DNA of 63,690 bases, filler included, from Dicyema japonicum (lineage: Eukaryota > Animalia > Dicyemida): NCBI GenBank assembly GCA_011109175.1. It is 12 parts of 12 records of this genome, joined end to end, with 100 filler letters (N's around TTAATTAATTAA, not from the genome) between each part and the next. Parts side by side here need not be neighbours in the genome. Positions count along the whole stretch, not along the records: positions 22,296 to 46,618 come from RDEW01000175.1; 11 more parts are not named here. One strand, 5' to 3'. Under the pieces are notes generated by a model that saw nothing but the letters and a program-made list of their open reading frames with translations, had not been told where the DNA came from and did not search any database. Positions 2,108 to 46,075 of the stretch are shown piece after piece; the stretch's first letter is position 1, and each line of letters opens with the position of its first letter. The translations under genes and the position numbers were made by a program.

Positions 2108-2172
2108 TATCCTCCTGCTAATGATAGATTATTAAAAATGGTCTAGGTCCTAGACCATTCTAGACTCTAGGA

Positions 2173-2470
2173 CAGTGTTTCTTAGCGTAGTCCCCAAAAA
2201 ATTTTAGGTGGTCCCCAAAAAATATTTTTAAGTCAATTAATTTTTTATGACTAAAAAAAATTATGAGTCACAGTTATGATAGGGCATCGTTCTGGGTTTT
2301 GTCACATTGGTGAAAGAAGTAGCACCACCATGTAATTACGAAACAACTGCGGGATTCATATAAAATGCACTCGCTACAAAAACTCTGCCATTTGAGCTAA
2401 AAAATGTACTTGATTCAACAGTCATGATTGTTAATTATATTGGAGGTAGGGCTAAAAATCATCGAAAAAT
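2173..2470 (+). mobile_element. hAT Buster/Charlie-type element end with transposase remnant
   Basis: Starts CAGTGTTTCTTAGCG after the 8-mer ctctagga (nnnTAnnn target). The internal frame GFVTLVKEVAP...ALATKTLPFELKNVLDSTVMIVNYIGGRAKNHR resembles ZBED5/FAM200 transposases. Confidence 0.6.
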
Positions 2471-2872
2471 TGTCACTGTGGATATATGATTGACTGGACT
2501 GAGTATCCTTCAATTTTTTGACTTTGACTGATTCCGTACTTGTTATAGTAATGCAAATAAATACATCTCACAGCTTCGTCATGTCTTCTGACATAATCGC
2601 TGTTGACTATTATCCCACAACGGGCTGCCAATTGACCAACGGTTTTTTTGCTTCTCTTTAATTTCTACCGACTCAGATTTTTATTTTTTTTCTATAATTT
2701 ATATATTTTTTACAAATCCATTCCAAATAAAAAAATCAATTCTAAATAAAAAACTAATTTATGTAATGTAATGTAACAAATAAGTGGACACAATTTATAA
2801 GTTTCTAATAAATCTTTATTTAATGCTTGAATAAAATACAATAACCACGTTTTCACAAAAAAGTAATATATG

Positions 2873-2997
2873 TTATTGAGTATTCTCACTTTCTTCAGGA
2901 TCTTCATTTTTATCATTTTCTTCGGATTCTAGACTTTCTTCAAATTCTTCACTCTCTTCAAGTTCTTCACTTTCTTCATTTTCTTCTGGTCCTTCAC
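2873..2997 (-). CDS. Acidic low-complexity C-terminus of an unknown protein (remainder in N gap)
   Basis: EGPEENEESEELEESEEFEESLESEENDKNEDPEESENTQ* built from GAAGAAAGT-like units. Confidence 0.35.
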
Positions 2998-3999
2998 NNN
3001 NNNNNNNNNNNNNNNNNNNNNNNNNNNNNNNNNNNNNNNNNNNNNNNNNNNNNNNNNNNNNNNNNNNNNNNNNNNNNNNNNNNNNNNNNNNNNNNNNNNN
3101 NNNNNNNNNNNNNNNNNNNNNNNNNNNNNNNNNNNNNNNNNNNNNNNNNNNNNNNNNNNNNNNNNNNNNNNNNNNNNNNNNNNNNNNNNNNNNNNNNNNN
3201 NNNNNNNNNNNNNNNNNNNNNNNNNNNNNNNNNNNNNNNNNNNNNNNNNNNNNNNNNNNNNNNNNNNNNNNNNNNNNNNNNNNNNNNNNNNNNNNNNNNN
3301 NNNNNNNNNNNNNNNNNNNNNNNNNNNNNNNNNNNNNNNNNNNNNNNNNNNNNNNNNNNNNNNNNNNNNNNNNNNNNNNNNNNNNNNNNNNNNNNNNNNN
3401 NNNNNNNNNNNNNNNNNNNNNNNNNNNNNNNNNNNNNNNNNNNNNNNNNNNNNNNNNNNNNNNNNNNNNNNNNNNNNNNNNNNNNNNNNNNNNNNNNNNN
3501 NNNNNNNNNNNNNNNNNNNNNNNNNNNNNNNNNNNNNNNNNNNNNNNNNNNNNNNNNNNNNNNNNNNNNNNNNNNNNNNNNNNNNNNNNNNNNNNNNNNN
3601 NNNNNNNNNNNNNNNNNNNNNNNNNNNNNNNNNNNNNNNNNNNNNNNNNNNNNNNNNNNNNNNNNNNNNNNNNNNNNNNNNNNNNNNNNNNNNNNNNNNN
3701 NNNNNNNNNNNNNNNNNNNNNNNNNNNNNNNNNNNNNNNNNNNNNNNNNNNNNNNNNNNNNNNNNNNNNNNNNNNNNNNNNNNNNNNNNNNNNNNNNNNN
3801 NNNNNNNNNNNNNNNNNNNNNNNNNNNNNNNNNNNNNNNNNNNNNNNNNNNNNNNNNNNNNNNNNNNNNNNNNNNNNNNNNNNNNNNNNNNNNNNNNNNN
3901 NNNNNNNNNNNNNNNNNNNNNNNNCTCGACATTGCATATAGATTCGATCTTCGAANNNNNNNNNNNNNNNNNNNNNNNNNNNNNNNNNNNNNNNNNNNN

Positions 4000-4011
4000 T
4001 TAATTAATTAA
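4000..4011. other. Artificial scaffold linker TTAATTAATTAA in N padding. Also at 7727, 15465, 22240, 46663, 50826, 52199, 54385, 55815, 57672 and 61100
   Basis: An identical 12-mer with stops in all six frames, always flanked by about 44 Ns on each side; 11 copies. Confidence 0.99.
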
Positions 4012-4279
4012 NNNNNNNNNNNNNNNNNNNNNNNNNNNNNNNNNNNNNNNNNNNNTAACCATAGTAGAACTGTGCAACGTATTATTTGTTTAATAATAGT
4101 ATCAGAAATGATCAAAGTTAACTAATTTGCTAAAATCGTTGATTTCTAAAAAAATACAAAAGAGAAAACACAGAATCCAAACAAAGAAAATTATGAACTA
4201 AAAAAGTGTTGTAAATGAAGACGACTCTGTGAATGATAGTAACAAAATCACCAATTCATTAGAAATTATGGACATTACT

Positions 4280-4900
4280 CCAACTCGTTGTCCCTTTCAA
4301 GTAACTCCACAGGAATATTTTGGATAAAGAATTTACTACATAATCTTGTCGAATAGATAAACAAATATTTTAAAAACTGAGACGCCATCATGCTGAATTT
4401 ACCAATGAAGCCGAGTCTTCTATTATTACCACATATAAGAATAACCGACAAGCAAGACATATCTGAGAGTTTTTGAAGTTAACAATCTTTTCGTTTGTTT
4501 TTTGCAATAATTTATTATATGACCGATCATGAAGTCTGGGTGGCCCCAGTATATTAAGACCTATATCCATCATATTGATGAGTGACGGAGGTATGATCCG
4601 TTCGACTTAGTAAAAGGCGTAGAGTTTTATCACGTAAAAGCTGATTTTGTCCAACCAATCAATATTCTACTGAGTAGTGTGTCTTTGCGACCAGATATTG
4701 ATGGATTATTCTGTTTTATTCCGAAAGTTTGAGTATCTTAAGTCTTCTATCTATCAATAAGGAGCAACAAAAAATTTGATATTGATATAAATTTTTCAAT
4801 TATGGGAGTGCATCTATTGGTATTATGTTGAATATTAATTAATCATAGTCTCCGTTCGAGGCTCCCAATCCCATCTATCAGTTACATATATTTTTAAATT
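4280..4900 (-). mobile_element. Possible heavily degraded rve-type integrase remnant
   Basis: Broken frames DWLDKISF and NSTP resemble the W..L..I.F.YN.TPH region of DDE integrases. There are many stops. Confidence 0.25.
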
Positions 4901-6484
4901 GATACAGATTTTGCAGAGTGTCATTTTCTCAATTTCGTAGAAACTGAATTTGCGATAATTTTTTACATTCTCATTTCTGATGTTAATCTCCACTGAATAA
5001 GGCAGATAATGAAATGGAAGATTTTGTTAGTTGGAGGTCACAGAAATGTACTTTGGTTATAAATAATAGTATAATCAAACAAAATTAAAACTCCCGAATG
5101 AACGAGTATGCAGCAGTAACGAGTGTCTCCACAATAATCACATCAGGGGTTGTAAAGAAGGCAATGGGTAAATCGAAAAATTAAATAAAACATTGAAATA
5201 TATCCTTAAAGTCCCAACATATCAACTTCAAATGGATTACTATTGTGGAAGAAAACAAATGTGCATTCTATAGAAGATTCAGATACGTTGCATGTATACC
5301 ATTACACGGATGAAAAAATAAGAACTTCATGGAACAAATTAGCATAAACGACTACCATAGAAGAAATTAGAACAAATTCATAGAATAAAGTAGAACAAAC
5401 GGGGACGATTATTTTTGTTTGTTATCAATCCAATGATGTTTCACATTACAGACTGAAAGGGTGAGAGTAAGAAAAATCAATATTTTTATATAATTTCTTC
5501 ATAATTAAAATAAACGTAGAGAATTGATGAATCAAAAAATGACTTATGAAGAAATATTGTTATAAAGTACATAAAAATACAAAAAGAACATTTCACATAT
5601 GAGGGACAATCATTACGTGTATAATAAATTTTATTATTTATGGTTGACCATATTAAAATATAAATTTTTCTAAAAAGAGCAGAAAATGAACTTGATAATT
5701 CAAACAGGTGAAATCATATCTAAAAGGGATATTTATTCTGAACAGGAATAAGTTGAAGGGGTAAAATCACTTAGTTCATTTATTTCTGATATTTATAATA
5801 AAATAATTTAAATAATATTCAGTTCATTGCTCAAAGTCCATTATATAGCTCTCATTCACTAATAGANNNNNNNNNNNNNNNNNNNNNNNNNNNNNNNNNN
5901 NNNNNNNNNNNNNNNNNNNNNNNNNNNNNNNNNNNNNNNNNNNNNNNNNNNNNNNNNNNNNNNNNNNNNNNNNNNNNNNNNNNNNNNNNNNNNNNNNNNN
6001 NNNNNNNNNNNNNNNNNNNNNNNNNNNNNNNNNNNNNNNNNNNNNNNNNNNNNNNNNNNNNNNNNNNNNNNNNNNNNNNNNNNNNNNNNNNNNNNNNNNN
6101 NNNNNNNNNNNNNNNNNNNNNNNNNNNNNNNNNNNNNNNNNNNNNNNNNNNNNNNNNNNNNNNNNNNNNNNNNNNNNNNNNNNNNNNNNNNNNNNNNNNN
6201 NNNNNNNNNNNNNNNNNNNNNNNNNNNNNNNNNNNNNNNNNNNNNNNNNNNNNNNNNNNNNNNNNNNNNNNNNNNNNNNNNNNNNNNNNNNNNNNNNNNN
6301 NNNNNNNNNNNNNNNNNNNNNNNNNNNNNNNNNNNNNNNNNNNNNNNNNNNNNNNNNNNNNNNNNNNNNNNNNNNNNNNNNNNNNNNNNNNNNNNNNNNN
6401 NNNNNNNNNNNNNNNNNNNNNNNNNNNNNNNNNNNNNNNNNNNNNNNNNNNNNNNNNNNNNNNNNNNNNNNNNNNNNNNNNNNN

Positions 6485-6710
6485 CCTCATCCGAGATACG
6501 AGACCTTGTACCTCCTTCCCGCAATTACGGCATCTGGCTCGACTCGCGGTCTTTCCAGGAATAATACGTTTTTATCGATGTGAACCCACAAGGCATCACG
6601 ATTTCGTTCAGACATTAAAAAATTTATATAATTTTTTTGATTTTTTTAATAATTTAAATCATTGATTTTTTTGTTGATTAAAATCAAATGATTTAAATCT
6701 AACAACCCTG
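6485..6710 (-). mobile_element. hAT transposon 5' end: TIR plus start of BED-finger transposase
   Basis: The minus strand begins CAGGGTTGTTAGATTTAAATC with repeated GATTTAAATC. ATG at 6615 gives MSERNRDALWVH..., and after one frameshift KTASRARCRNCGKEVQGLVSRMR (BED zinc finger). The element runs into the N gap. Confidence 0.75.
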
Positions 6711-6805
6711 ACATTAATCCATGCGGATGCATCCACGACTATATGGAAAGATGATATTTGTGAAAAACACTAATAATAATTTTGTGTCACCAATAGTNAT
6801 TATTT

Positions 6806-6888
6806 AAATTTTTTTGATTTTTTTAATGATTTAAATCATTGATTTTTTTTGTTGATTAAAATCAAATGATTTAAATCTAACAACCCTG
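6806..6888 (-). repeat. Second copy of the same hAT end, with a different flank
   Basis: About 83 bp nearly identical to 6628-6710. Confidence 0.75.
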
Positions 6889-8683
6889 TTCATATTTGAT
6901 CTCAATTACTAACATATCACAGGGGTGTCTTCACTAGGTGTGCCCACATAGCATAGTAATTAGTTCTGCTGTGATTCTCACATTGTTATCACTGTCTGGA
7001 TGGTCAATCACCAATGCTGAAAAATTTGGTGAATTGATTGGCCCATGTAGGATCTGACTATTCTGGTGTTTCCTTCAGTGATCTTCTGTTAAAATAAAAA
7101 GTTCTTTATTCCATGTCACGAAAAGTAAAGCTGCTTGACGGTCAAGTTGCGCTTTTTCTTCTAGAGAACTACATCCATATGCTGAAGCTCATATATAGCC
7201 TCTGATGTTACTTTCTTTCAGTCCCAGCGAGATATACTTGAAATGGACTACTTTTCCCAGCGAGTTATGCTTGAGTTTGTAAATTATGTTTTGAATTTCC
7301 GTTCTTCAGAAAATATTTTAAAATTCGACATTATAAAAACATTTTAAAATCTAATTTTCACAATATTGTCCAATCAATTACCTTAGCTGGATTACGTAAT
7401 AAATTATTTAATTTTATTAAAAAAATGTTATGATAACATATTGAAAAGGAAGAACCAAAGAATACTCTCTACTTTTTATTCTTTTTGTTTGGTGTAGGTC
7501 CGGTTCCTCAGTGAAAATTTTCACTGTTACCCTCATGAAACTGTTAACGAAGTTGTTGTAATGAGAGATCGCAACAACCTTGTTCTTAAAACAGATGGTA
7601 GAAGCTTCCAATCCTCCCCAAAAGTTAATTAGGATCATCAGTTGCGTTCCTTTATTACTTAGCTATTTGATCAGGAAAAATCNNNNNNNNNNNNNNNNNN
7701 NNNNNNNNNNNNNNNNNNNNNNNNNNTTAATTAATTAANNNNNNNNNNNNNNNNNNNNNNNNNNNNNNNNNNNNNNNNNNNNCACAGTAAGCAAAGTAGA
7801 CTGTCTCCTTGACAACAGCTAGAGATGCCATTAGGTTTTTCGACGTTCGTTACTTACTTTCGATATCATAGACCCAAATGATTTATAAAAGAGGTCGTTT
7901 TAGGCCCGAAGACTCCGCTCGTTTCGACAAAAGATGTACAAAGAATATGGCGGAGAGGCTGTCGTATTTTCTTATTTTGGAATTCTCTCGAATGTTCGAG
8001 CAGCCTCCCCAGTATTCAACGCTGATTCTGAAAGTCTCGACTGGGGAAAAGTGTCTATGAAAGCCAAATCCCAAATTCAAGCATTTCACCTGAAGAAGGG
8101 GAACTCAGTTATCCCGTTGAGTTACTTTCTATCCCCACGATTCAGGCCCACCAGTTCCAGAGATTTCCTGAATCCAGCTGCCTCAAAAGAGCCTATACCC
8201 CGTTACTGGTGGCATACCTTGGGAAACCGACCACTGCTGCGTCGGCAAGAAAGCGGGTGAAGCCCTTTGCAGTCCACAACCGTACGGATGAGGCTGGCAC
8301 AGCTCGACTCCGAGACGAAGGAAAGGCCAATTCGAAGGGCGTTTTCATTATATTCAAAAAGGGAACCAATTGAATATATGCCTTACAGTCGATCTCCGTC
8401 GAGACGTCTGGTGTGTTTTACCCCTGCACGTCAAAGTTTATCAGGTTAATGAGGGGACTTGCAGGACTGCGGAAGTGAGAGTCTAATAACATGATGGCTC
8501 TTTTTTAACATTGGACTTGCGATCATTAGGCAGTATCTCTATTACGTGCTCACTCCTGAAGGCCATAATGGAACTTTTTCCTAAAAATTGACTTTTATTT
8601 GTTTTTGTTAATTTAAGGCAATAAAGTTTATCATTTCAGAAATGTGAGTCACCCGGGCAATTACTAATACAGTCTATAGCCGC

Positions 8684-22294: not shown

Positions 22295-23872
22295 NGGGAA
22301 ATGGTTGGACAGGTCGAGAACTGATATTGTCTGTGCATGGATGATGAGTATAGACAGAGAGGAGTCAAAATATATATTCTGAATGGCATCCCACTCCTTT
22401 ATTTCAGTATAGAATGTAATAATCTGCATTATTGTCACCCCCCACTCACTCGGACTGACTCACATTCAATACGGGGAGTCGTCCCTAACCTCAGAATCCG
22501 CCTCATATTTCCAGCCTCCCAAACCGTACAGTCCCGTCGGCGTGGCTTAGTCAGACACAACAACTACCCAGTGACCAGGACGTCTTGTGTGTACTCAGGA
22601 GGAGGGAGGGAGTAGGAGGCAATGCAGGTTATCGGGGGTTTGTTGATGGACTCGACCAAGGGGAGGGTGGTCACCTCCCAGTCTTCGAAGGTGAGGTCCA
22701 CCACGGCCAATTCATGGGCACTGACACAAATATGTTGTAGGGGATATCTAATGGTATAAATAATAGTTTTAAAACACGAATTCCAGTGGACCCTCAATAT
22801 TATGAAATCGACCACTGGGGACTCAAAACTGAGGACCAGTCGTCTTTCTGACTTGAGGACTGTCACCACATTCCCGAATCCAAAGTTGACAGAGCAGCCC
22901 CCAATAAAGCAGGCCAGTCCACTCACCTCGTCACTCTCCATTTTGGTGATTGGCTGGCATTCTACACTATGAGGACTCCCCAGTACCCTTGTTTGCGTAA
23001 AGGGTGATGTTCCTGACCGGAAGTGGGTGTGGTCGTCCTCAAAGTCCATCTTCTCGTACATTCCGTTCTCATAAGTACAGTTGAAACATATTCCGTCACT
23101 ACACCAGTTGGCAGTCACCAAATTCTATTATTTATATTTGAATATATTTAACTTGTTTTAAAGATATAGTTTTTAATATTTTATTTCTACTGTTCAATAG
23201 TATTATTGTCCCTGTCTTGTGGGCTATCATAAGTACCACAATTCGGGTTCTGAGATATGGCCACTATATCACCCCTGTGTGTCACCAACCAAGAACTAAC
23301 TCGCACTGGTTGAGTACACCACATTCCTCCTGTTATGGGCCCCCTCAATGTCAAAGACACGAATGAACGTGTGCTGTCCTCCACCCCCCTCCGCATAGCC
23401 CAGCCACACCTCCCTCCTGTCAGCCGTTAGGCAACAGGCGGTCAGTTTGGACTCGTCTCTACCAAATATTAATTAATCCAACAGTTCTGAGAGTAGACTA
23501 GTGCATTGTAGACTAAGCTGCAGTTGTTGGTCCACTTGGCCAGTCCATACACTTGATGGCCTCCCTCCCGACCAGGAGTAGTTGGTTCTTCCATAGTTTG
23601 ACCATACTTAACCTCAATCCTGGAGAAGTACAAATATTGGGCCTTTCTATCGACTTGGCAGACGTGGTGAGTGTCCGGGAGGGCATATCTGGCAAGGAAT
23701 GGGTAGAGGCATACAAGTGGAGGTGATCCTCGCTTAGGATCCCCAGCAGTTGGTTTCTCTCTTGAAAGCAACAGCGATGGGATTGGACGGGTATCCAAAA
23801 TTACTTTTCTAATAAAATGATTTATCAATTTAATTAAACCTTGAAGAATTTGAAGTATTCGTCATTAGTCAT
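22295..23872 (-). CDS. Lethal giant larvae / tomosyn (STXBP5) family WD40 protein, 3' part lost in gap
   Basis: Spliced start MTNDEYFKFFK|KSNFGYPSNPIAVAF (cf. HGFP.QPSALA). Also FIGG...VLSFESPVVDF, HELAVVDL...PLVESINKPPITC and VLVTG|HADGTVRF (cf. LLTGHEDGTVRFW). Introns of 31 and 22 nt; at least 2 frameshifts. Confidence 0.75.
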
Positions 23873-24974: not shown

Positions 24975-25769
24975 GACGCTACAATATAAGAGGGAACAAG
25001 TATTAGGGATTGTGATATATTATAGAAATATACGTGCTTATCTCCAAGAGGTTATGTTTGTTTGATAATGAGTAGTACTCCGATGAATATGTGTCCAGAC
25101 GGTATTAGTGCTCATTATTAATTCATAGCTTCCATCTCAGTTTCAGCCATACAGGTGAATTTGCTGTATTACTATTTATAGATTACGTAGGGCTCATTAG
25201 AAACGTCAAACCCATTACTCGGCCCACCACCCCGACTACCACCCCGACAACCACCACCCCGACTACCACCACCCCGACAACCACCACCCCGACAACCACC
25301 ACCCGGACTACCACGATTACACCCAGCACTCCGAGTACGATTCTGAAAGGTTATATTGAATAAAACTATTGTTAGAGAATATAATAAAACAAACCGAAAA
25401 AGTGTTAAAGGAGGAAAAGAACAAGACGAAAGTGATATAGACATGTGTATATTAGATCATAAAATCATGGATGATATTATTAAAACGAACTACGTGGAGG
25501 AACAAGATATATCCACGTACATTATTCGCATAAACAGCAGGTTTCACAAAATTTGTGAGGAACCCATCGAAAATGCCGAGAACTTTGAAATTTCGAATGA
25601 GAAAGTGCGCATAATTGACAAAGTCGTGCGAGCACATCATCATATGAATTGGATGAGCAAGATATCCAATGTGATCTCACATTTGAGACAAAAACAGACA
25701 TACACGGTGCATTTTAGATTTATTCCTCTCAGTGAGAACTGTGTACTGGAACGATACGACAACTTTTAA
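24975..25769 (+). CDS. Unknown multi-exon protein with Thr/Pro-rich mucin-like repeat
   Basis: Four consecutive 25-27-nt GT-AG introns splice in frame into ...DYVGLIRNVKPITRPTTPTTTPTTTTPTTTT...; 15-bp repeat unit. One frameshift is needed to reach the terminal 137-aa ORF. Confidence 0.5.
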
Positions 25770-27399
25770 ATCCAAAGAGCCCCAAATATTGCCTCGAAAG
25801 TCTTCTCAGTGAGTTGCAAGAGGAAACAAATTTAACAGTCAAAATTACATTTCCGGTGAGTCATACATTTGTATTGCTTAGACTAATTGGACTAACTTGA
25901 CTTGCGTATATTTCGACAGAACAGCTCACTGTGGAGTACGACTGGGGGACGACGTTGTTTACTNNNNNNNNNNNNNNNNNNNNNNNNNNNNNNNNNNNNN
26001 NNNNNNNNNNNNNNNNNNNNNNNNNNNNNNNNNNNNNNNNNNNNNNNNNNNNNNNNNNNNNNNNNNNNNNNNNNNNNNNNNNNNNNNNNNNNNNNNNNNN
26101 NNNNNNNNNNNNNNNNNNNNNNNNNNNNNNNNNNNNNNNNNNNNNNNNNNNNNNNNNNNNNNNNNNNNNNNNNNNNNNNNNNNNNNNNNNNNNNNNNNNN
26201 NNNNNNNNNNNNNNNNNNNNNNNNNNNNNNNNNNNNNNNNNNNNNNNNNNNNNNNNNNNNNNNNNNNNNNNNNNNNNNNNNNNNNNNNNNNNNNNNNNNN
26301 NNNNNNNNNNNNNNNNNNNNNNNNNNNNNNNNNNNNNNNNNNNNNNNNNNNNNNNNNNNNNNNNNNNNNNNNNNNNNNNNNNNNNNNNNNNNNNNNNNNN
26401 NNNNNNNNNNNNNNNNNNNNNNNNNNNNNNNNNNNNNNNNNNNNNNNNNNNNNNNNNNNNNNNNNNNNNNNNNNNNNNNNNNNNNNNNNNNNNNNNNNNN
26501 NNNNNNNNNNNNNNNNNNNNNNNNNNNNNNNNNNNNNNNNNNNNNNNNNNNNNNNNNNNNNNNNNNNNNNNNNNNNNNNNNNNNNNNNNNNNNNNNNNNN
26601 NNNNNNNNNNNNNNNNNNNNNNNNNNNNNNNNNNNNNNNNNNNNNNNNNNNNNNNNNNNNNNNNNNNNNNNNNNNNNNNNNNNNNNNNNNNNNNNNNNNN
26701 NNNNNNNNNNNNNNNNNNNNNNNNNNNNNNNNNNNNNNNNNNNNNNNNNNNNNNNNNNNNNNNNNNNNNNNNNNNNNNNNNNNNNNNNNNNNNNNNNNNN
26801 NNNNNNNNNNNNNNNNNNNNNNNNNNNNNNNNNNNNNNNTGGGCGTAATGTCAGTCCCTAGTGGCGTGAGGCCACTAGGGCAGCTCAGCTAATGATATCC
26901 CATTCGGCATATCTGGGAGGGTTCTGTTCTTATCAACCCAGTTGCTCCAAATTGATGCTAACCGCACAAACAAGTTTCTTGTTGTTGTGCACGTTGAGGA
27001 AAGAGGACTCGTTTGTGCACGTTGAGGAAAGATGACTGAGACGTACTACTCCATCACAGTTATGAGGGACACAATCTCATCCCCTTTCTGGAGTCTCCGC
27101 AAGTTGATGATGTCTCGGTAAGGTCTTCTCTCAATTGCCAAATAGTTCTCTTTCGAAAGCGTGGACTTGGCGATGGCCAACTCCCTCGCACAGGCCTCTC
27201 CTCAAAACTTAGTCTTCACACATACCCGCGGTCCCTACCCGTCCCTCTCTCGCTTCAGCTCATTCACGTTCTTTCGGCAGTCCCCGAATTGTCTCCTCGG
27301 ACTCACTGTCTTCCTAAGTGTTTTTATCGCAGTTCCTGTATGGTTTCTTCCAGCTCAGAGTTGAAAGAAAGGTTGATCCGAAAAATTGAAACTTCTCAC

Positions 27400-28033
27400 A
27401 TTCGCTCCAAAGAGGTGGAATCTTGTTACGAGACTAAAACAGGAACAATGGTCAGCAAAATCAAGTCCCTGGAGCAAGAACGGGGTTTGATATCAAGACG
27501 AAACAGCAATAAATCAATTTTCCGATTGTCGTTTTCAAGAGAAAGACACCTGTTGACTGATACATCGGCAAATAAGTTATCCTACTTGTGTTAGTCCGTC
27601 ACCCTGTGGTGGCGTAAACACGGTAGTTATTAACAAACCGTCAGCTAAGGAGTCTACACACAAACAGAGAAACCCAGCAAACGTCATTAAGAAAGCACTC
27701 TGGGAGTTTGTGTTTGAAATGAGGAGTTGGAATATAGTCTGACAGTGCAGAGACAGGAAAAAGACCAGTGAATAAAAAAAGAACAGCGTTGGGGGTCGAG
27801 TTAAAAACAGTCGACAACAAGCCGTCGTGTGAAGACTCAAAGACGTAGATCATCAAATTGGTGTACTTTAAGCCAAAGCTGGAGGAGTGAGTGAGATGTT
27901 TAAAGTGAGTGGCCTCAAATTTGTTGTCAGTACGTTTGATGAAAATGACTGTACTTTCACTGGACTGGACAGTACACGTCGAAGGCATTGGACAAATAAA
28001 AGTAGGACGACCGCCTACACTCCCCGTCATCAA
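27400..28033 (-). CDS. Hydrophobic multi-pass membrane protein fragments, possibly ZIP (SLC39) family
   Basis: AVLFLFTGLFPV and LCLCVDSLADGLLITTVF weakly resemble ZIP TM1 and TM4. No HELPHE motif seen. Confidence 0.2.
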
Positions 28034-28194: not shown

Positions 28195-29635
28195 CTAAAT
28201 GAGCCAATAATAACGAGAAATCAATGAACTAAATAATATATCCAAGTCAAGTTTTTTCTTCGACTTGACCTCTTGGATTCCATCAAGAAAGTCGATATGA
28301 TAGATTGTATCCTGCTCCTTCCTCAGCGCAATCATCCCCTTAAAGAATAACCCACAACGCCAATACTGCCTCAATGCACACAGCACGACACTGTGACCCA
28401 TTAAAGTCCTCCGTCGACCTTGCAGCTCAAAGTAGTTGACATCCTTACTAATTTCTTATAACAACTCAAAAAACCCCATAGTCATCTTCCTCGAATGAAT
28501 TTGAAGAATACGAAGACGAGCCTCCTCATTCGGGTTAGGAAATTCGATTTTCTTGTCAAATCGTCCTGACCGGAGCAAGGCCGTGTCCAGAATATCGACT
28601 CTGTTGGTTGCTGCGATCACTTTAACGTCCGTGTTAGGCAGGAATCCGTCCATTTTGAACAACAACTCAATCATCGTTCTCTACACTTCTCGGTCTCCAG
28701 TTTTCTCGCTGTCAACCTCTTAGTCCCTGAAATCACTCAAACACTAAAACCAATGGCGTCAGTTCGTCTATAAAGATTATGGGAGCCTTTTCTTTGGCCA
28801 AACTTGAAGGTATCCTCACCATTTTTGCCCCATCGACGATAAACATTTGCACAAGCTGAGGACCGGCTAATTTTAGGAATGTCGACTTCGTCTGGGATGC
28901 ACATGCCCGAGCCATCAGCGTCTTCCCTGTACCGGGACACCGTAGAGGAGCTTCCCAATATGAGTACCCACCCTTAGGAGGCTGGATTCCAAGAGACTCG
29001 AATTTATCTTTATGTTCATTGGAGTACTACAGCTTCTATCAGCTCTTCAATTTGTTTTTCGAGCCCCCAATGTCACTATACTCCTCCGTAGGTCTCTCGT
29101 CTACTTCCATTGCCTTTACTCTCGAATCATACCTTATTTTATAAATAATATAATACTCTCTTGAAAGCTTTTTCCAAAATAAGATAACTGTCCTTGTTGA
29201 CCCCTAAAATTAAAACACGTGGACACATACGACAAGATCATCCGGTTTTAGATCCTCAGGCTCGACTAGTCCAATGACTAAAAGAAAGTATGTCTGCCGG
29301 GTTGAGGTCTTTACGATGGCACATTTTCCTTTTCGCTGTGAGTCCAAGTTAATTGTGGCCCCTTCTTCTCAAATTGGTCATTATCCAACTCGAGGATCTA
29401 AGGATGAGGTCAAATAGAACCTCAGCGACGTTGGAAACCAAATTATGGGAGCATTCGGTTAACTTTCAGCTTTTCTTTGCTCCTCCGTATTTTTGTTTTT
29501 CATGAACTGAATGTCGTATTTGAGGGTCTACATCTCAGAGCGCATGCACTGTAGTTTGATTATGGTGGATTATACGAATATTTCATCTTCTATTAGTTTT
29601 GTCCATCCTTTTATCTCTCGGTAGGGATTTGAAAT
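28195..29635 (-). pseudogene. PSMC3: 26S proteasome AAA-ATPase Rpt5 (regulatory subunit 6A), intron-containing and disrupted
   Basis: [93 protein letters not shown]|GMIALR. In-frame TAG at 29528-29530, several indels, and the 5' end abuts a hAT insertion. Identity is secure; pseudogene status is about 0.6. Confidence 0.85.
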
Positions 29636-30708: not shown

Positions 30709-31159
30709 ATCTAGAGGTTACATTCACTCAATGACAATTAATTTTAAAAAACTTTAAAGAGTACTAAAAATTAAAAACTTTAACGATAAAGTTGTCAAAA
30801 AAAGAATCGCCCATTAATTTCTTAATAAGTATCTTCTCGAGATTTGAAGAGCATTGAATTGAATGATTAAAACACTTCTAATGTTCTACAATGTATTTCG
30901 ATATGAGTGGGGGTTCAAGTACACTCGTTGTTATTAAAGCATCCGTCTACTTTGTAGGACATGCGAGAAGTCATGTTACGAAGTCTCTTCTCACTTCTAC
31001 TGGAGAGATTGTGTTTTTATCAAATCGGAGCAGTGCAGGTGGTTGGCAATGTAAGGTCTGGCTACTTACGCGCAATAAATCGGACAGTCTATCAATCAAA
31101 GAAAAAAGTTTAAAATTAAAGGATTTTAACAATTATTCAAATTACTATTTCCTCTTACT

Positions 31160-32612
31160 CTAAAACATTGATTTTTGTGGATTAGATGGCACGTGCTTTA
31201 TAAATCTAGTAATATATACCCAAATGTCTACTTTTCGGGAATACTTCAACGAAACAAGAGTTTGGTCTAAATCACTCCACTTCGAAGATATACTGACCAA
31301 AAATACAACCAAACACCCAGGCACCAAAGTCTGTTCCATATGATTTGTCAGCCTGGTCTTGGGACGTGGAATGGCTGTGTTCTTGCGAGCCAGAGCACAA
31401 AGCAGTTCGTTAAAGTCGTCAATTGATAGATCCACTGTGTTCCAGACAAGTCCACTAATGTAAATAATCCATTCCTCTCCGCCTTCTTATTCCATATTGT
31501 GAATTGGAATACGCGATGGACTCCGGACCTCTTCTCCTTAAACTCGGGGACAAAGATATCCTCATCCAGACATAGAGAAAACACCTCCTCTTCTAAAATA
31601 GAGATTTGGCTGCTATTTTTATGCAAGTCTATCATGTCGCCATCTTCAAAATCCAGTGCAGAGAGAAACACGTCACACTCTCCCCCGATTCTCTTCACTT
31701 CACTTGTATGCTTTTTTATTTCTTCAATAGACTGGAGTAGTAATTTTTCCGGCGTTTGTCCATATGCACAAACGCACACATTGTGTCCCCACACGGCTGC
31801 TCTGAGTAGAGCATGGTCAACACAAAAGTCTCCGCACACCACGATGTCAAAGTTGTAATTAGTTTGACGTATATCTTTCCCTACATTCGACTTTTGGTGA
31901 ATGAAAGTGATTATACTTGTTTAAGAGGAAGACTATTTATTGAGATTTGTTTGCAATTGATGACCTTTATCGCCTCGGCACAATTGGGAGCATTCACAAG
32001 ACAAACTACTCTCACACACCCCTGAAACCTCATCATAATAAGACTTCCTTTAAAAATTCCACTTTCATTGATAATTTAACAATTTCCATCATTACTTTCT
32101 TTAACTGATCACTCCTCGTAGCCCAATCGGCCGAGAGGACCTGGGCTTTCTTATTTGACTGACACTGTCCAGCCTAGGGTGAGAGAACTAGAGTACATTT
32201 AACAATTCAGTCTGTGTTGTTATTCTTTCAACATTCTCTGTTTGTCTTAGCGTCTGTTCGATTATTAACTGCTTATCCTTCTCCAGTGATTTTAATTCGT
32301 TTTCTATGGATATTTCTCGGAGTCCAATGTCGTTGAGTTGTTGTTTTAATAGTCTTAACATGAATATTAATTAATACGAGATTTTGCTAGTCAGTTGAGT
32401 GGAGTTCTTTTCATTTTTTAAACAGATCTCCGTCTTCTCCTGATTTATTGACTCGAATTTCAACTCCAAGTCATCAAGGCGACCTCTTATATCCCACGGT
32501 TTCTTTCAACCTGTTTTTTAATTGCTGTCGTCTTTCGAACCATTGGGTTAGTGGATTTTTTAGCCTGAAATACAAATAAAATATATACTTCTTTATCACG
32601 GCTAGTTCTCAT
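31160..32612 (-). CDS. Kinesin-14-like protein: N-terminal coiled coil plus C-terminal degenerate motor-homology domain
   Basis: Neck-like FLRKSYYDEV..GCVRVVCLV, then NYNFDIV, GHNVCVCAYGQT, GLFTLVDLSG, ALARKNTAIPRPKTRLT and DQTLVSLKYSRKV. Introns of 23-26 nt; about 3 frameshifts. Confidence 0.75.
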
Positions 32613-32804
32613 AACACAACAACAAATATTCAAGCGCGTAATTTATTAAAATTATTGAATAAAATTAAAAACGTGCTAATCAGTTGAGATATGCTTTTAA
32701 TAATAATTGAACTTTAATCCTTAATTTAATCAGACACACATTCAACCTATCCAAATCTAAATACTTCAAGAACCTCCCCCGGAAATCGATGAATCAGAAT
32801 TGCT

Positions 32805-33091
32805 ATGCCAAAAAAGAAACGCGTGATTCTCGCTGACTTCGCTGCGGACATCACCCCTGTCTTGGACACGACTACACGGGGAAAAACCAGAAAGAAGGCC
32901 CTGTCACATATGCAACTCCAATCCGATCTCCGTCCACCATTTGTTCTCCTGTCCTGGACCACCGGAAATGTCGTTACCACACGCAGCGCTTCGGATCTCT
33001 GGGAGCGCCCGGCCCTCGCTATGCGCCACTTAATAGCCGCCGGCTTCCTGCATGTCAGGGAGTTGGGGGCTACTAACTAACTAACTAACTA
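32805..33091 (+). mobile_element. 3' end of a Jockey/I-like non-LTR element with (TAAC)n tail
   Basis: HHLFSCPGPP...DLWERPALAMRHLIAAGFL, then actaactaactaactaactaa. Confidence 0.65.
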
Positions 33092-33106
33092 AATCTCAAC
33101 TAAAAT

Positions 33107-34010
33107 ATGGCTGACCAGCTTCCTCTCAGGAAGACTCGGTCGTACAGAATTCATGAAAAAAAATCTCGATTCCGCTACCTGCCAAATGGCGTACCACAGG
33201 ACTCTTCTCTCTTCCCTTTACTCTTCAATCTCCATTTGAGGCGACATGCCTACCGACAAAGCAACACTACTCTTGAGTTACGCAGACGACATTGTGATTG
33301 CCTCAAACATCGGCAAATCACTGAAGCCACAGTCAGGCTCCAAATACACCTGGACTGTCTCACCAATTGGCTAAGACTTAACCACATGATGCCTTCCCCG
33401 TCAAAATCATCTGTGACCTTAGTCACATCCGACCGACGACAGTTTAACGCCAGCCCTGATCTATATATATACAACGGAAAACTACCCGTCCTCAAACACC
33501 CCAGAATTTGGGGTGTTATTTTCGACCAATGCCTTTCCTTTCTCAGCACATTGACTTCACATGCAGTAAAGTCAAACGCAAACTAAACGCGTTAAAGCCA
33601 TATCATTGCCACTTTTGAGACTACTCTCAAAAGTACCTCCCCGAAAAACGGGTTAACTATGTCTAAGCAGATGCACAACCACATTTCCACTCAGGCCATC
33701 AGATTTCTCGAACACAATAAACTACTAGACTCCCCTTATCGATTAATCCTAATCATTGCTAAACAGAAAAATTCGTGTATAACTATCAAAGATCCGCTCA
33801 GGCCACCATCCCCTCCTCTACAGACCGCAATCACTGCGTGAACCCAGATGACCTTTTCTCATGCCCTGGGCCACCCAAATCGTCTCCCCACCACGGGCTC
33901 CGTGAGCTGTGGGAACGGTCGGCCTCCGCCGCTCGCTTTTTACTTGCTGCTGGTTTCCTACAAGATAGCGAAACCGGAGATCAACTAACTAATTATAGTT
34001 AACTAAATTA
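33107..34010 (+). mobile_element. 5'-truncated related non-LTR element (RT remnant plus 3' end)
   Basis: LPNGVPQDSSLFPLLFNL, SYADDI, SPSKSSVTL and PRIWGVIFD, then DDLFSCPGPP...ELWERSASAARFLLAAGFL and a degenerate AACT tail. Confidence 0.75.
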
Positions 34011-35611: not shown

Positions 35612-35899
35612 TTAGTTGACACAATTATTATATTTTATATAAAAGAAAGCAAGTCGTCCGTAATAAAAGTAAATAAAATGATTCTTACAATAAGTTACAT
35701 AGCTCCCAAATTCCTGCCCCACCACACATTGCCAAATCGGACTGTGCAGGAGATCAAACTCATTTTTAATAAACACAGCAATGTCCCTTTCTGAATCACT
35801 TTGCTCCAATGCTCTTTTAGCACAGTCGATAGCTTCCTGCTGAAGGGACTCCGACATATCCACAAGTCTTACTACAGGATGTCTATCTTCCAATAGCAT
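35612..35899 (-). CDS. DYNLL: Dynein light chain LC8 family, divergent and intronless
   Basis: DMSESLQQEAIDCAKRALEQ...ERDIAVFIKNEFD...PIWQCVVGQEFGSYVTYCKNHFIYFYYG. Confidence 0.9.
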   Translation of the reverse strand: MLLEDRHPVVRLVDMSESLQQEAIDCAKRALEQSDSERDIAVFIKNEFDLLHSPIWQCVVGQEFGSYVTYCKNHFIYFYYGRLAFFYIKYNNCVN

Positions 35900-37670: not shown

Positions 37671-40337
37671 ATGGAAAATAACAACTCCAAGAGTAGTAAC
37701 GATTCTAAATGTCACTCAGATTGTGATTCAGAAAAACCAAGTCAACTAAAAACCAATCGCTCTAATTCCAATTTTATCAGCCGAGAGAAACCTGATTCTA
37801 TGCACGAATCTCCTGTAGTTAAAAATGAAAATCAAAAAACACCAAAAAATGATAAATTCAGTGTCTCTGATCTTGTCAACGAATCTGACCAAACCTTCAC
37901 AATTTCTCATTGGCAGAGATCATAAAATTATACCTTAAAGACAAAACTGTTCTTCATGATATATCCTCATATGTTACAAAGCTCGATCAAAGCCAAATTG
38001 ATCACGTGCTTATAGAAATGAAGCCTTTGAAGGTGCCGCCGGATACCTTCATCAAAGATTTCGAAAATAAAAAAGAATTTAACTCTCTCGAGTATTCTCC
38101 AAATACATTTCCTCATGTTGCATATGCTGTGGAATTCCCTCTGAGGAACGGGGACCACATTTATGAGTATCAAGTCGAGACCAATGCCGTTTGGTTCATC
38201 AGAGTCCTCGAAATAAAATATCCGCTGATCAAAGCTCAGTTTTTGGGAGACCAAAAAACGTTTTCCATCAAAATTGACTCACCGAAAATCAAACAACTTT
38301 ACCATGGTGGAAAAAACGGGCTACTTTATCGATATCCTCCTTCATGGAAGGAAAAGACATGCAAGGAGAGATTGCACAGACTTTGACGAATTGCTATTCC
38401 TTTAAAGATGAATTCCTTATAAAAGTATTTCCCTCGCATTAATCTTAGAAAAATATATTCACGTGGAGCTCTCAGGGTCTTGTGGAAAAGTACATGGAGG
38501 TAAGGCACAAGAGAAGGCACGTGTCTTTGGTTTGGTTCGCACAGATCATAAAAAACGTTGGAGGATATTTATTCCTGAAATGGATAAGTCCGGAAGTGAA
38601 TTTCCCTGAATTTTGGATTTTTTGTACTTCGCAGAGACTTTGCCCTGTTGGGTATGGTGCTCAGAATAATATTGAATATGGACTCCCCGAAGTTGAAGGT
38701 ATGTTGACGGAATACTTATTTTTGGAGGAGTCAAAGCGTTTGAGATTTCTTTGGGGTTTTTATTTGTGTTTTCTTTATTTTTGAATACAGAAGTGTTTTC
38801 CGTGCCAGCATTTTTGTTTGAGGTAACCGAGACGTCTAACGTGGTTTAGGTGCCCTTTGAAATGACCGTTCATAAACTGAAGGTTGGAATGGCAGTGGAG
38901 GCTTTGGATTTGAAGACTAGACAGATCCTATTTCCAGCAAAAGTAAGCGAAATAATCGACAACACGTTCATTAAAATCGATTCAATCGAATCTGGTGCAA
39001 AAATTGAGTCCCTTTATTCTCTTTCCGATGGAATCTTCCCCGTTGGGTTTTCTCTGAGCCAAACTGGCTCTTACGTTGTCTGATGGTTGTGTTTGGTGGT
39101 CTTATGTTAAAGGGACCAGTAAACTTTTTCGTTGGAGTAAACATAGAGGGATAGGAAAGGGACTTGAACAAGCTCCAAAATCGTTCACAAGAACAGTAAA
39201 TATTAATTAAAAACTATTTTTATCAGTTCAAAAAAAAGCCTGGATTCGAACCCGGGAATGAAGCTTCAAGTGATCAATCCTACGAATAATCAAAGTGTCT
39301 GCCCAGCCACAATCCTCAAAGTTGCTGGACATTTGATCTTTGTCAAAATAAACGAGGAATCGCCTTTGATCTATTCAGTCCTCAAGTCCTCCCCTTTGGC
39401 TGGGCTGAATCAAACGATTATCCACTCAGTCAGCCACAATTGCCCCGACTATGTGAACAAGACAGAAGTATACTATTGAAGGCCCTTCTATCACATATGT
39501 TGGACGACCATGTGGAAATTAGGAGACTTGAGGACCTTTGGAGTCCTGAGATCTTCATCAATGCTCAGTGCTACTCAGGGAAGTACCTGTATGTGTCAGA
39601 AATACTTCGGATTCCTAAAATAATTGGACCTGGGCCAATTTCTCTGGTCCTTAAGTCACTATATGAGTATATTCTTGGATGTACATCAAATTTTAAACGT
39701 GTAAATGAAATGTTAAGTGTTTTCGAAGATTTAACCAGTTCGATAAAGATATCCGTAAAAAAGTATTTATTATTATATTTTTATATTTATAATTGAATTT
39801 ATGTAATTAATAAATAGTAAATTCGACAGTTTTCTCAAGTTTGAGGTCTGTGACTCTGTGGGACAACTAAGCCACTTTCTACTCAAATTATGTCTAAAAT
39901 TAAAAGCTTGTCCGAATTTAATATCCCTCGCCAATTTATCAGGAAACCCTTGTTTAATATGTATATTTAAATATATTAAATTAACAAGGCAACTCCAAAA
40001 TTCCAAAATCTAACAACGTAAAAAAGATTTCTCAATTCCTGAGATCTGCTCCAAATCTAAGAGAAAAATCGAATGTAGTCAAACTCGGTCACTTTCTGAG
40101 GGAAATACCAATTCCCTGCCAAAAGATGCACGGGACTGGTCCTGTGATGATTTGATAACGTACATCGACTCTACGGAATGCCGGAACGTGACCTCCGTGC
40201 TGAGAGCCATGCAATTTGACGGACAGTCGTTCCTCTTATTGGACAAGCGAACGTTGAAGGATTACCTGTTACTCAAGGACACAATTTCTGACGCCCTGCT
40301 GAGGATTATCAACGAACTGAGAAATTCCTACCATTAA
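37671..40337 (+). CDS. SFMBT: SFMBT-type Polycomb protein (MBT repeats, SLED and SAM), spliced and frameshifted
   Basis: MBT motifs WFAQIIKNVGGYL...EFWIF...RLCPVGY, LKVGMAVEALD...FPAKV and FEPGMKLQVINP...CPATI. SLED-like IPKIIGPGPISLVL and KLKACPNL. SAM WSCDDLITYIDSTEC...FDGQSFLLL. Confidence 0.85.
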
Positions 40338-43258: not shown

Positions 43259-46075
43259 ATGCCACACAGCAATGGAATGGAAGGCCTAATAACAGTTATC
43301 GACAAAATACAAATGCCTTTACATTTTCTTCCCTGCCCTGCAACCTCGACCTCCCTCAAATTGTTGTCGTCGGCTGCCAAAGTGCAGGCAAAAGCAGCGT
43401 ATTAAAATTTTGTTGGAAGGTTTAGTACAAAAAATCACATTTTTAGAGATTTTCTGCCCCGGGGGACTGGAATTGTGACCCGAAGACTCTGGTTCTTCAG
43501 CTGATCAACTCCGATGAAGGTTGTACATGTCATAATGTATAGAATATGGCGAATTTTTGCACAATTCATCCAAATACTACAACTTTAACGAAATCCGAAG
43601 TGAAATTCAAGCAGAAACAACGAGATCTTGTGGAGCCAACAAAGAAGTATCGGACGTTCCAATAAACCTAAAAATATTTTCCCCCAACGGTAAAAACATC
43701 AAAAATAAACATTTTTAGTGATTGATTTGACTTTGGTCGACCTTCCAGGACTCACCAAAATTGCCGTGGCGGACAAAACCACGAAATCATTGAGGTAATA
43801 AGGAAAATGGTCCTCAAATTTATCGAAAACCCGAACAGTCTTATTTTGGCTGTCACTCCTGCCACAACTGATTTGGCCAACTCTGACGCCTTGCAAATCG
43901 CAAAGGAAGTGGACCCTCGGAACCCGCACTATTGGGTCATTACTAAGCTTGACATGATGGACACGGAAACCAATGCGCGGGAAATATTGGAAAATAAACT
44001 CGCGCCTTTGAAAAGAGGTTAGTAACGTGATTTATTTCAGGCTATGTCGGGGTGGTCAATCGTAGTCAGCAAGATATCGAACAAAATATTTCGATTGCTG
44101 TCGCCCACAAAAAAGAACGTCACTTTTTTGACAACCATCCTGCATATAAGTATTAATACTAGATGATACTACTATTAGGCATATGACTGATCGAATGGGA
44201 ACAGAATTTTTACAAAAAACGTTAAATCAGCAACTTTTGCAACACATTTTTACTGTGCTTCCTTCGCTGCGACAAAAAATATCTGAAAACCTCAGTGTTT
44301 TGGAATTGCAAGTAAAGGAAATTGAATCAAGAGGAGGGTCAATGTCCCACAAGTTACTGATTTGGTTAATTTGGTTTATTTTTATATTAATAGCGCAATC
44401 GAGGAGTTTTCTACTGTTTTGTCCGACAACATAATGTCTACAAATACGACTGCATTGCTTAATGCTCAAAGATTATCGATTGGAGCTACAATAAATCGAT
44501 GCTTTTTTAAAACCCTTCCAACAAATTACAAAAAAGTTATTATTTTATTTTAAACAGATATTTGATGAAAATAGTAATCAAATTCTCCAAAATATACGTC
44601 TAGCTATTCAAAACGTGCATGGCGTCAAGTTAGTTATTTAATGTCTACTCAGAACTGGACTTCATACACCAGATTTGGCATTTGAAATGATCGTCAAAAT
44701 GGATTTCGAAAAAAGCGCAATTCCTATCAAATCCTGTCTGGAGGAAGTCTACAACTTCACCAGTCTCGCAATCGAGGAAGCTCAAAAAACGTTTGTAAAA
44801 AAATTATTTCGTTTAGTTTGAGGAATTTCCATATTTGCAGACCGCAGTGCATGGATTGATTTTAAATGCACTTAAAATGTACCACCAAGAGACGCTAAAT
44901 CAAATTGAGCTCAATATAGATTTCCATTTGAATTATATCAACACAAACCATCCTGATTTTATCGGGGTTCCCACGTATTTTTGTATTTTTTTAAATTTCA
45001 GACAAAAAAATAAACGAGAAGAACGTACAGGACCGGTGTGTTTAAATTATAATAAATTAGCTTACTCAAAAAAGGGGATACATCACAATAAGCAATTTAT
45101 TGACGACAAAAAATAAGGGACACGTTTATTATGCTGCATTGGTCACCGAAACCTCGTCTTATACAAGGATGAAGATGTCAATTTTATATTTCATTTTGAT
45201 TAGGAAAAAGACAAAAAACTGTCGATTTCTGCCACCAAACTTCGTTATCAAATTCCTGAAGATTTTAGCACAAGTTTCACAATTTGTCTTGTTGGATATG
45301 AAGTCAAGTTCATAGGTGTTACATTATTTTAGGGGATCTATATTTAAGGACTTAAAAATCCTTCATTTCCAGTGTTCTAGTTTTAGTGAATGCAACGATT
45401 GGTTGGTTGCTCTCATCGAAATCGGACTGAGGCCCCTCGATCCAGCGAATCAAGTCGAATTAAATATTTTGCTATTTCTAGAATTCGTATGATTTGGAAA
45501 GAGGTGTAAATGACGTCAAAGAGTGTGTGGAGTCATATAATATAGTTTATGAAAAAATTATTCTCGACATTATTCCAAAAATTATTTTCTATTGCTTTCT
45601 TAACAAAGTCTAAATATTTGTAATTTCTAGATTGTCAAGTATTGCAAGAAAGGTTTAATTGCTGAATTATATTCCCAATGGCCGATTGTATATCAAATAA
45701 ATATATTATTAATAGGAAGAACTGCTAAAACAATCTCCAGAAAAACTTGCCAATGATCAAGAAATCCTCAAACTCTACCAGGCCACCAAAGAAGCTGGTG
45801 AATATATCAAAAATGTTCACAACGAAGTCGCAAAAAATCAAATTAAATCTCCGACTTTTCAGTCACTGTTAACTTTTGTGAATTTATAGAAATTCGAATA
45901 ATCTAGTTTCTTTTGATCAATCTCAAAATCCGCCTAAAGAGCCATTATTCACTTTAGATCAGCAGGAAAACAATATTCCGTTTTTTAATTTTTTGTTAAT
46001 TTTTTAGAAATCCAATTCCACTGCCTCCGTAAGATTATTTTGTTTTAATTAGTTAGTCGGCCCAACAGAAAATGA
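43259..46075 (+). CDS. DNM: Classical dynamin (GTPase, middle, PH, GED); end approximate
   Basis: [60 protein letters not shown] and [12 protein letters not shown]-like LYKDED|EKDKK...[13 protein letters not shown]-like [15 protein letters not shown]. Many 22-29-nt introns and 1-nt indels. Confidence 0.9.

Follow-up and report, generated by a model that had tools for sequence, protein, structure and literature searches.

Can a kinesin head that has lost the means to bind ATP be kept as a working protein in an animal? Detailed study of non-catalytic kinesin heads has, to our knowledge, been confined to budding yeast, where they make a processive motor of a kinesin-14 that is otherwise non-processive. 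There the heads of Vik1 and Cik1 bind microtubules and provide a foothold for the catalytic Kar3 head (PMC4338441; PMC3384419). The question is raised by a locus of Dicyema japonicum at positions 31160-32612 of the window (that is, the whole stretch of DNA that was analysed, 63,690 nucleotides with filler included), in a 24-kb piece taken from RDEW01000175.1 of assembly GCA_011109175.1, which a first-pass annotation had described as a candidate non-motor kinesin-14. The answer that we favour, at somewhat better than even confidence, is that the locus is a real, lineage-specific protein-coding gene derived from a kinesin-14, that its product has lost the nucleotide pocket, and that it is predicted to act as a non-motor microtubule protein, either as a partner head or as a cross-linker.

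Gene architecture

The gene lies on the minus strand. Direct reading places its ATG, the first of the open frame, at 32612-32610 and its TAG stop at 31162-31160, so that the limits originally proposed for it are exact at both ends. Enumeration of short GT..AG pairs gives six exons separated by five GT-AG introns of 23-26 nt (24, 24, 23, 23 and 26 nt, in order from 1 to 5), and a predicted protein of ~443 residues. All five GT-AG pairs are intact, four of the five begin with GTA, and four of the five (introns 2-5) remove stop codons or shift the frame exactly as needed.

Exon 1 (32589-32612) carries the start codon and reads MRTSRDKE; the candidate intron 1 that follows (32565-32588; 24 nt, GTATAT..TTCAG) is in frame and free of stops, and hence optional. 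Exon 2 (32378-32564) encodes the basic N-terminus and the first part of the coiled coil, with a 1-nt frameshift at ~32499/32500 in a short A run, after which intron 2 (32354-32377; 24 nt, GTATTAAT..GTTAAG) takes out an in-frame TAA. The coiled coil continues through exon 3 (32197-32353; LLKQQLNDIGLREISIENELKSLEKDK...) and, past intron 3 (32174-32196; 23 nt, GTACTCTAG..CCCTAG), which shifts the frame as needed, ends in exon 4 (32045-32173), where it gives way to a neck (..EIVKLSMKVEFLKE) that aligns with EVQDLKGKIRVFC of the kinesin-14 protein P0003. Intron 4 (32022-32044; 23 nt, GTCTTATT..TTTCAG) takes out two TGA codons and shifts the frame. Exon 5 (31917-32021) encodes strand beta-1 of the motor-homology domain, intron 5 (31891-31916; 26 nt, GTATAATC..CCAAAAG) takes out a TAA and again shifts the frame, and exon 6 (31160-31890) holds the remainder of the motor-homology domain and the TAG. 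Within exon 6, beyond a second 1-nt frameshift at 31441/31442, lies the alpha-4 to alpha-6 region (VDLSIDDFNELLCAL..IPRPKTRLT..SLKYSRKV).

The predicted protein runs, in order, through a basic N-terminus of ~30 residues, a heptad region of ~135 residues that includes exon 3, a neck, and a kinesin-like core of ~256 residues. The heptad region is free of proline and 33% charged, with a heptad a/d contrast of z 3.4 against shuffles, and the coiled coil passes into the core as ..KVEFLKE followed directly by GCVRVVCLVNAP. The C-terminus extends 22 residues (positions 422-443) past the alpha-6 motif SLKYSRKV. All the parts named in the first-pass annotation, namely tiny introns, an N-terminal coiled coil, a kinesin-14-like neck and C-terminal motor homology, are thus seen in the gene model. 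To that description is added that the reading frame in the window is broken by the two 1-nt deletions. The open stretches run to 150 and 92 codons in a 24-kb piece where runs without a stop average 16 codons, and that of the core is among the longest there. Comparison of the 24-kb piece with itself reveals no second copy of the gene within it.

Introns this short are rare in animals. Myxobolid myxozoans and Dicyema japonicum are the only animals for which introns below 30 bp have been described, their 5' signal being reduced to 'GTa' (PMC13644364), and a neighbouring dynamin gene has GT..AG introns of 27, 23 and 29 nt between highly conserved exon ends. Given the dynamin introns and the published ones, introns of 23-26 nt are credible for this genome. 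The published assembly, a merge of Platanus and Falcon products, has 36.7% GC, 4.1% gaps and 49% repeats (PMC6736024); the GC content of the sequence studied here is near 37%. Its N gap and LINE fragments fit that assembly too, as do the sequencing runs, dated 2019, of which one is large and the others are small and bear Nextera adapters.

Derivation from a kinesin-14

The core falls into two collinear pieces that match the Pfam Kinesin model (PF00225), at 18.3 bits (profile 64-84) and 19.4 bits (profile 263-324), scored separately. By the HMMER comparison proposed for the locus at the outset, kinesin homology is weak, both scores lying under the gathering score of 29.3. The second of them, alpha-4/L12/alpha-5/beta-8/alpha-6, is the best-kept stretch of the protein; within it, IPRPKTRLT stands where canonical kinesins have H(I/V)PYRxSKLT, and the basic L12 residues are kept.

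An exhaustive search of 1.84 billion protein representatives with the 150-aa core turned up no close relative and one genuine match, P0003 (E 1e-5), itself a KCBP/KIFC3-like kinesin-14 by comparison with the PDB. The other two of its three matches are low-complexity tandem-repeat proteins unrelated to kinesin, and were dismissed from their sequences. Against P0003, the stretch from the neck to GQT scores 112 (z 17.6 over 300 shuffles) and the portion that runs from GQT to the C-terminal end has z 8.4 against shuffles; with such controls, chance likeness to kinesin is rejected. The last 92 residues reach a BLASTP E of 2e-5. Ranked by their match to the core piece, the top nine kinesin chains of the PDB are without exception kinesin-14s (KCBP, Ncd), with weak scores. 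A word-index protein search with the 172-aa open stretch, which covers proteins of 95-300 aa, returned no match, nor did phmmer against the PDB with the 35-aa beta-1 exon. Language-model features fall in kinesin clusters at 0.87-0.89, and serve as a lead only.

The layout is likewise that of kinesin-14, with the motor-homology domain at the C-terminus directly after the coiled-coil neck (..VEFLKE next to GCVRVV). Because the P0003, PDB and BLASTP matches agree with the C-terminal position of the domain and with a coiled coil that runs straight into beta-1, kinesin-14 ancestry appears well supported, and the original description of a kinesin-14-type gene in an animal genome, with coiled coil, neck and C-terminal motor homology, holds good in that the closest relatives found are kinesin-14s. 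The sequence is so divergent that it would form a very long branch, on which the placement in any kinesin tree would be fragile.

How much of the fold survives is a separate matter. The motor fold had been taken to be kept, and the sequence hallmarks of beta-1, beta-3 and beta-7 and of alpha-4 to alpha-6 are indeed present; ~13 residues have gone after switch II and the core is ~70 residues shorter than the 327 positions of the Pfam model. AlphaFold2, run on the 150-aa core alone and without an alignment, predicts an order of strands and helices compatible with the kinesin fold, at a pLDDT of 41, which makes the model too poor for use.

The nucleotide pocket

All four nucleotide motifs of the kinesin head are altered. 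In exon 5, LVNAP (VRVVCLVNAP; 32000-31986) occupies the place of the canonical RxRP (N4). The remaining three lie in exon 6: where the P-loop (N1) should read GxxxxGK[ST], AYGQT passes straight into an alpha-2-like PEKLLLQSIEEI (PEKLL), with GQT and PEKLL at 31762-31742; switch I (N2; SSRSH within NxxSSRSH) is RSGVH at 31530-31516; and switch II (N3; DLAGSE, or DxxGxE) is LVDLSG, with DLSG at 31452-31441, the copies varying as DLS(G/A/V)NT. GK[ST], SSRSH and DxxG[ST]E are absent from all six frames of the gene.

The loss of all four motifs, reported from the start, is therefore borne out by direct reading and by the six-frame search, as is the statement that no frame gives GxxxxGKT. The manner of loss needs amending. 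LVNAP, RSGVH and DLSG are changed as described, whereas the P-loop was lost not by substitution but by an in-frame deletion after GQT that removed ~18 residues including GxGKT. A further ~13 residues are gone between switch II and the alpha-4-like VDLSIDDFNELLCAL, and by profile coordinates and kinesin-1 numbering the distance between GQT and what remains of switch I is estimated to be ~40 residues less than canonical kinesins have.

Might the assembly have erased the motifs of a normal, catalytically active kinesin-14? The many 1-nt indels in the coding sequence of the assembly lend the idea its starting point. Contigs from four DNA runs of one sample, aligned to 31000-32800, speak against it: several short-read contigs, with 94-98% identity to the window, run gap-free through the sites of the P-loop and of switch I, and their differences near these sites are synonymous. 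Such independent contigs include both near-identical ones and ones 94% alike. Restoring the P-loop would take an insertion of ~54 nt, which is not a homopolymer correction, and GK[ST] occurs in no frame. Because short-read contigs span both sites gap-free, the motif loss is not an assembly artefact, and a normal enzyme hidden by assembly error is an explanation to which we give hardly any weight. Polished sequence had been named as what could bring the motifs back; the independent contigs restore neither the P-loop nor switch I.

Frame breaks and the quality of the assembly

The two 1-nt deletions, at ~32499/32500 and 31441/31442, amount to two breaks in 1.3 kb of coding sequence, and no intron explains either of them. 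At the DLSG frameshift the available GT..AG candidates are 13 nt, which is too short, or 21 nt, in the wrong phase, and an intron there was rejected. Three different contigs have one base more at 31441/31442 (C, G or A, plus strand), with which they read DLS-G/A/V-NT in frame; at 32499, one short-read contig has an extra T, with which the frame is restored.

The same kind of damage is found in conserved neighbours, genes that are surely essential. The dynamin gene (43277-45120, plus strand), with Dynamin_N and Dynamin_M pieces, is broken in frame at least four times, each time by one base at a short homopolymer, and Dynamin_N pieces that overlap in the DNA are nevertheless contiguous in the Pfam profile (98-122 and 119-164). 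These one-base breaks point to indel errors in the dynamin part of the assembly. A proteasome-type AAA ATPase gene (28459-29026, minus strand) has its frame broken just before its P-loop, which is suggestive of the same type of error. Because contigs carry extra bases at both sites in the kinesin-like gene, and because dynamin and the AAA ATPase are similarly broken, we read the two frameshifts, on balance, as consensus errors of the long-read-derived part of the assembly.

Other members of the gene family are plainly damaged. One contig has another frame-breaking form at 31442 (FVDL, then TGA), and other copies show a 7-nt deletion at 31291, a +1 insertion at 32413 and a stop five codons early at 31177. 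Damaged members therefore exist, and the copy in the window could be one of them. In three runs there are contigs that connect 32502 with 32255 by way of 40 unrelated letters (the interval 32255-32502), and a further contig leaves out 31952-32108 as well as 32145-32550. Such contigs represent rearranged or shortened copies of the region that encodes the coiled coil in this gene family.

Variation among copies

Several versions of the gene, 90-99% alike, are found among the contigs, and may be paralogues, alleles or the genes of co-infecting sister species. Of their 135 differences, 40 are listed, pooled over several contigs, and 35 of the 40 fall in modelled coding sequence. These 35 are distributed over the three codon positions as 9/5/21 (binomial P=0.001 for the excess at the third), and the listed differences comprise 15 synonymous and 15 non-synonymous codon changes, for a rough dN/dS of ~0.3. 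In other copies, +1 and -1 indels occur as a pair at 32317-32328, which leaves the frame intact. The neutral substitution pattern expected of a pseudogene is not what the 9/5/21 and 15:15 counts display, though some other copies are damaged. A dN/dS near 1 had been named in the first-pass annotation as the mark of a pseudogene; in the rough form available here, the ratio shows coding constraint instead. The pattern, as drawn from listed and pooled differences, looks like that of moderate purifying selection rather than of a drifting pseudogene. At the glycine of switch II the copies vary between G, A and V, as expected if phosphate sensing no longer matters to the protein.

Proposed mechanism and its alternatives

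How might such a protein work? The proline-free heptad region of ~135 residues would form a dimeric coiled coil, which a kinesin-14-style neck would join directly to the C-terminal motor-homology domain of ~256 residues. That domain appears to retain the sequence hallmarks of beta-1, beta-3 and beta-7 and of the face formed by alpha-4/L12/alpha-5/alpha-6, and to have lost GxGKT from the P-loop, the two switch motifs, the RxRP that contacts adenine and much of loop 11; because all of these are absent, binding and hydrolysis of ATP in the kinesin way should be impossible. Microtubule binding would then be independent of nucleotide, by way of the retained basic L12/alpha-5 surface (IPRPKTRLT). 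It is not assured, because the deletions reach into main microtubule contacts, namely loop 11, of which part is gone, and alpha-4, which has lost its start. The head might serve as a non-catalytic foothold in a heterodimer with a catalytic kinesin-14, as Vik1 and Cik1 do with Kar3, or the protein might be a homodimeric static cross-linker.

These steps do not carry equal conviction. That the locus is a real, selected gene without an ATP site seems probable to us from its sequence and variation; granted this, a microtubule-binding non-motor would be the likelier role, with less assurance than the gene itself. A partner role of the Vik1/Cik1 kind is plausible by analogy, though that the protein should be an obligate partner of a catalytic kinesin-14 seems, taken overall, unlikely. 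Slightly less likely still would be the fuller proposal of an independent animal origin of the Vik1/Cik1-type arrangement, in which a P-loop-deleted kinesin-14 paralogue would supply a heterodimeric minus-end motor with its second, non-catalytic head, or a small family of such heads would tune one catalytic partner.

The most serious challenge to a functional gene comes from decay. A duplicated kinesin-14 may have lost its ATP site and now be drifting in the repeat-rich genome of a reduced parasite, either in the copy in the window or across the whole family. The two 1-nt frameshifts in the window, the 7-nt deletion, +1 insertion, frame-breaking variant at 31442 and premature stop in other copies, the LINE fragments directly upstream of the gene, a search of sequencing runs for the stretch that listed DNA runs and no RNA run, and the want of homologues in the protein searches (the word-index search and that of 1.84 billion representatives) would all be in keeping with such a history. 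Against it stand the third-position excess and the 1:1 ratio of synonymous to non-synonymous changes, which are unlike neutral drift, together with open stretches that reach 150 and 92 codons in a piece whose stop-free runs average 16, and five GT-AG pairs that have all remained intact. The frameshifts themselves lose force as evidence of decay in that some short-read contigs have the extra base at each of the two sites, and in that conserved neighbours are similarly broken, clearly for dynamin and suggestively for the AAA ATPase. We accordingly regard a pseudogene as unlikely, though by no means negligible.

Even a functional product need not be a microtubule protein, and could have kept the kinesin scaffold for an unrelated role, for example as an adaptor or a structural coiled-coil protein. 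Such a role would fit the loss by deletion of key microtubule contacts (loop 11 and the first part of alpha-4), a core ~70 residues short of the Pfam model, and a switch II glycine that varies (G/A/V) between copies. Yet it is the alpha-4/L12/alpha-5/beta-8/alpha-6 stretch that is best kept, with basic residues retained in the L12 motif, and Vik1 and Cik1, which are without an ATP site, still bind microtubules (PMC4338441). A role away from microtubules thus seems to us rather doubtful, and a non-motor microtubule protein of kinesin-14 descent remains the preferred reading.

Relation to other kinesins

Set beside Vik1 and Cik1, the predicted Dicyema protein has the same arrangement of an N-terminal coiled coil and a C-terminal motor-homology domain without a nucleotide site. 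The likeness is one of architecture only, with no sequence similarity detected: Vik1 and Cik1 chains are absent from its PDB sequence matches at E up to 10. Because neither chain is among those matches, any likeness would be convergent, and the convergence proposed in the first-pass annotation agrees with their absence. Unlike the yeast heads, the Dicyema protein keeps recognisable kinesin-14 sequence (NVCVCAYGQT, LVDLSG, IPxxxxxLT); because this remains, its loss of the nucleotide site would be a younger and independent event in the animal lineage.

With the canonical kinesin-14s (Ncd, KIFC1/HSET, KIFC3, KCBP, Kar3) it shares the order of coiled coil, neck and C-terminal motor, the junction of neck and beta-1 (FLKEGCVRVVC here, LKGKIRVFC in the canonical form) and the beta-3 signature NVC(I/V)xAYGQT. 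It differs from them in being without the four nucleotide motifs and ~70 residues of the core, in having a much shorter coiled coil, and in possessing no N-terminal tail domain beyond its ~30 basic residues.

Parallels among animals are KIF26A and KIF26B, of the kinesin-11 family. These animal proteins have a kinesin motor-like domain and, as described, no ATPase activity, yet they remain associated with microtubules (PMC3387196). Their motor domain is N-terminal and of full size, they belong to another kinesin family, and they are conserved across animals, whereas the Dicyema gene is of the C-terminal-motor type, has its P-loop deleted and has no relative detected outside its own genome. The original statement that no animal equivalent had been described accordingly survives within kinesin-14, for which no description of non-catalytic or degenerate heads in animals was found in the open-access literature, and fails for kinesins at large, ATPase-dead animal members of another family having been described (PMC3387196).

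If the preferred reading is correct, a non-catalytic kinesin head would have arisen independently and more recently in an animal, and the design of 'one active leg, one foothold' would not be a fungal oddity. The gene would also offer a natural deletion map of a foothold head, in which the beta-core and alpha-4 to alpha-6 are kept and the P-loop, switch loops and L11 are lost, and it would bear on how the cytoskeleton is remodelled in extremely reduced parasites. Its practical value is limited, in that the probable host does not lend itself to experiment and expression is only predicted.

Flanking sequence

Four of the neighbours, namely dynamin, the MBT and SLED gene, the LLGL fragment and the dynein light chain, mark the sequence as that of an animal. 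Directly upstream of the gene lies a fragment of a non-LTR retrotransposon (reverse-transcriptase-like; 32747-33586, both strands). The depth of short-read contigs rises at 32759 from ~50-150 to >1000-7000, the fragment being a high-copy repeat. On the other side of the gene, a 184-codon open stretch on the plus strand (27040-27591) has a weak, sub-threshold match to the KIF21A coiled-coil domain (E 0.003-0.01), which probably reflects coiled-coil composition only. Farther out are a 15-nt tandem repeat, ACCACCCCGACAACC (25224-25314; ~5-6 copies), which encodes a run rich in Gly, Arg and Cys on the minus strand and one of Thr/Pro on the plus strand and is followed by an N gap at about 25960-26820, and, at the edge of the piece, a lethal-giant-larvae (LLGL) domain fragment (22567-23124, minus strand). 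Beyond the retrotransposon fragment, a dynein light chain gene of the LC8 type (35612-35899, minus strand) is intact in a single exon (Pfam Dynein_light, E 2e-28), and a gene with an MBT repeat and a SLED domain (Scm/SFMBT-like; 37910-39796, plus strand), a metazoan marker, has introns that appear longer than those of the kinesin-like gene.
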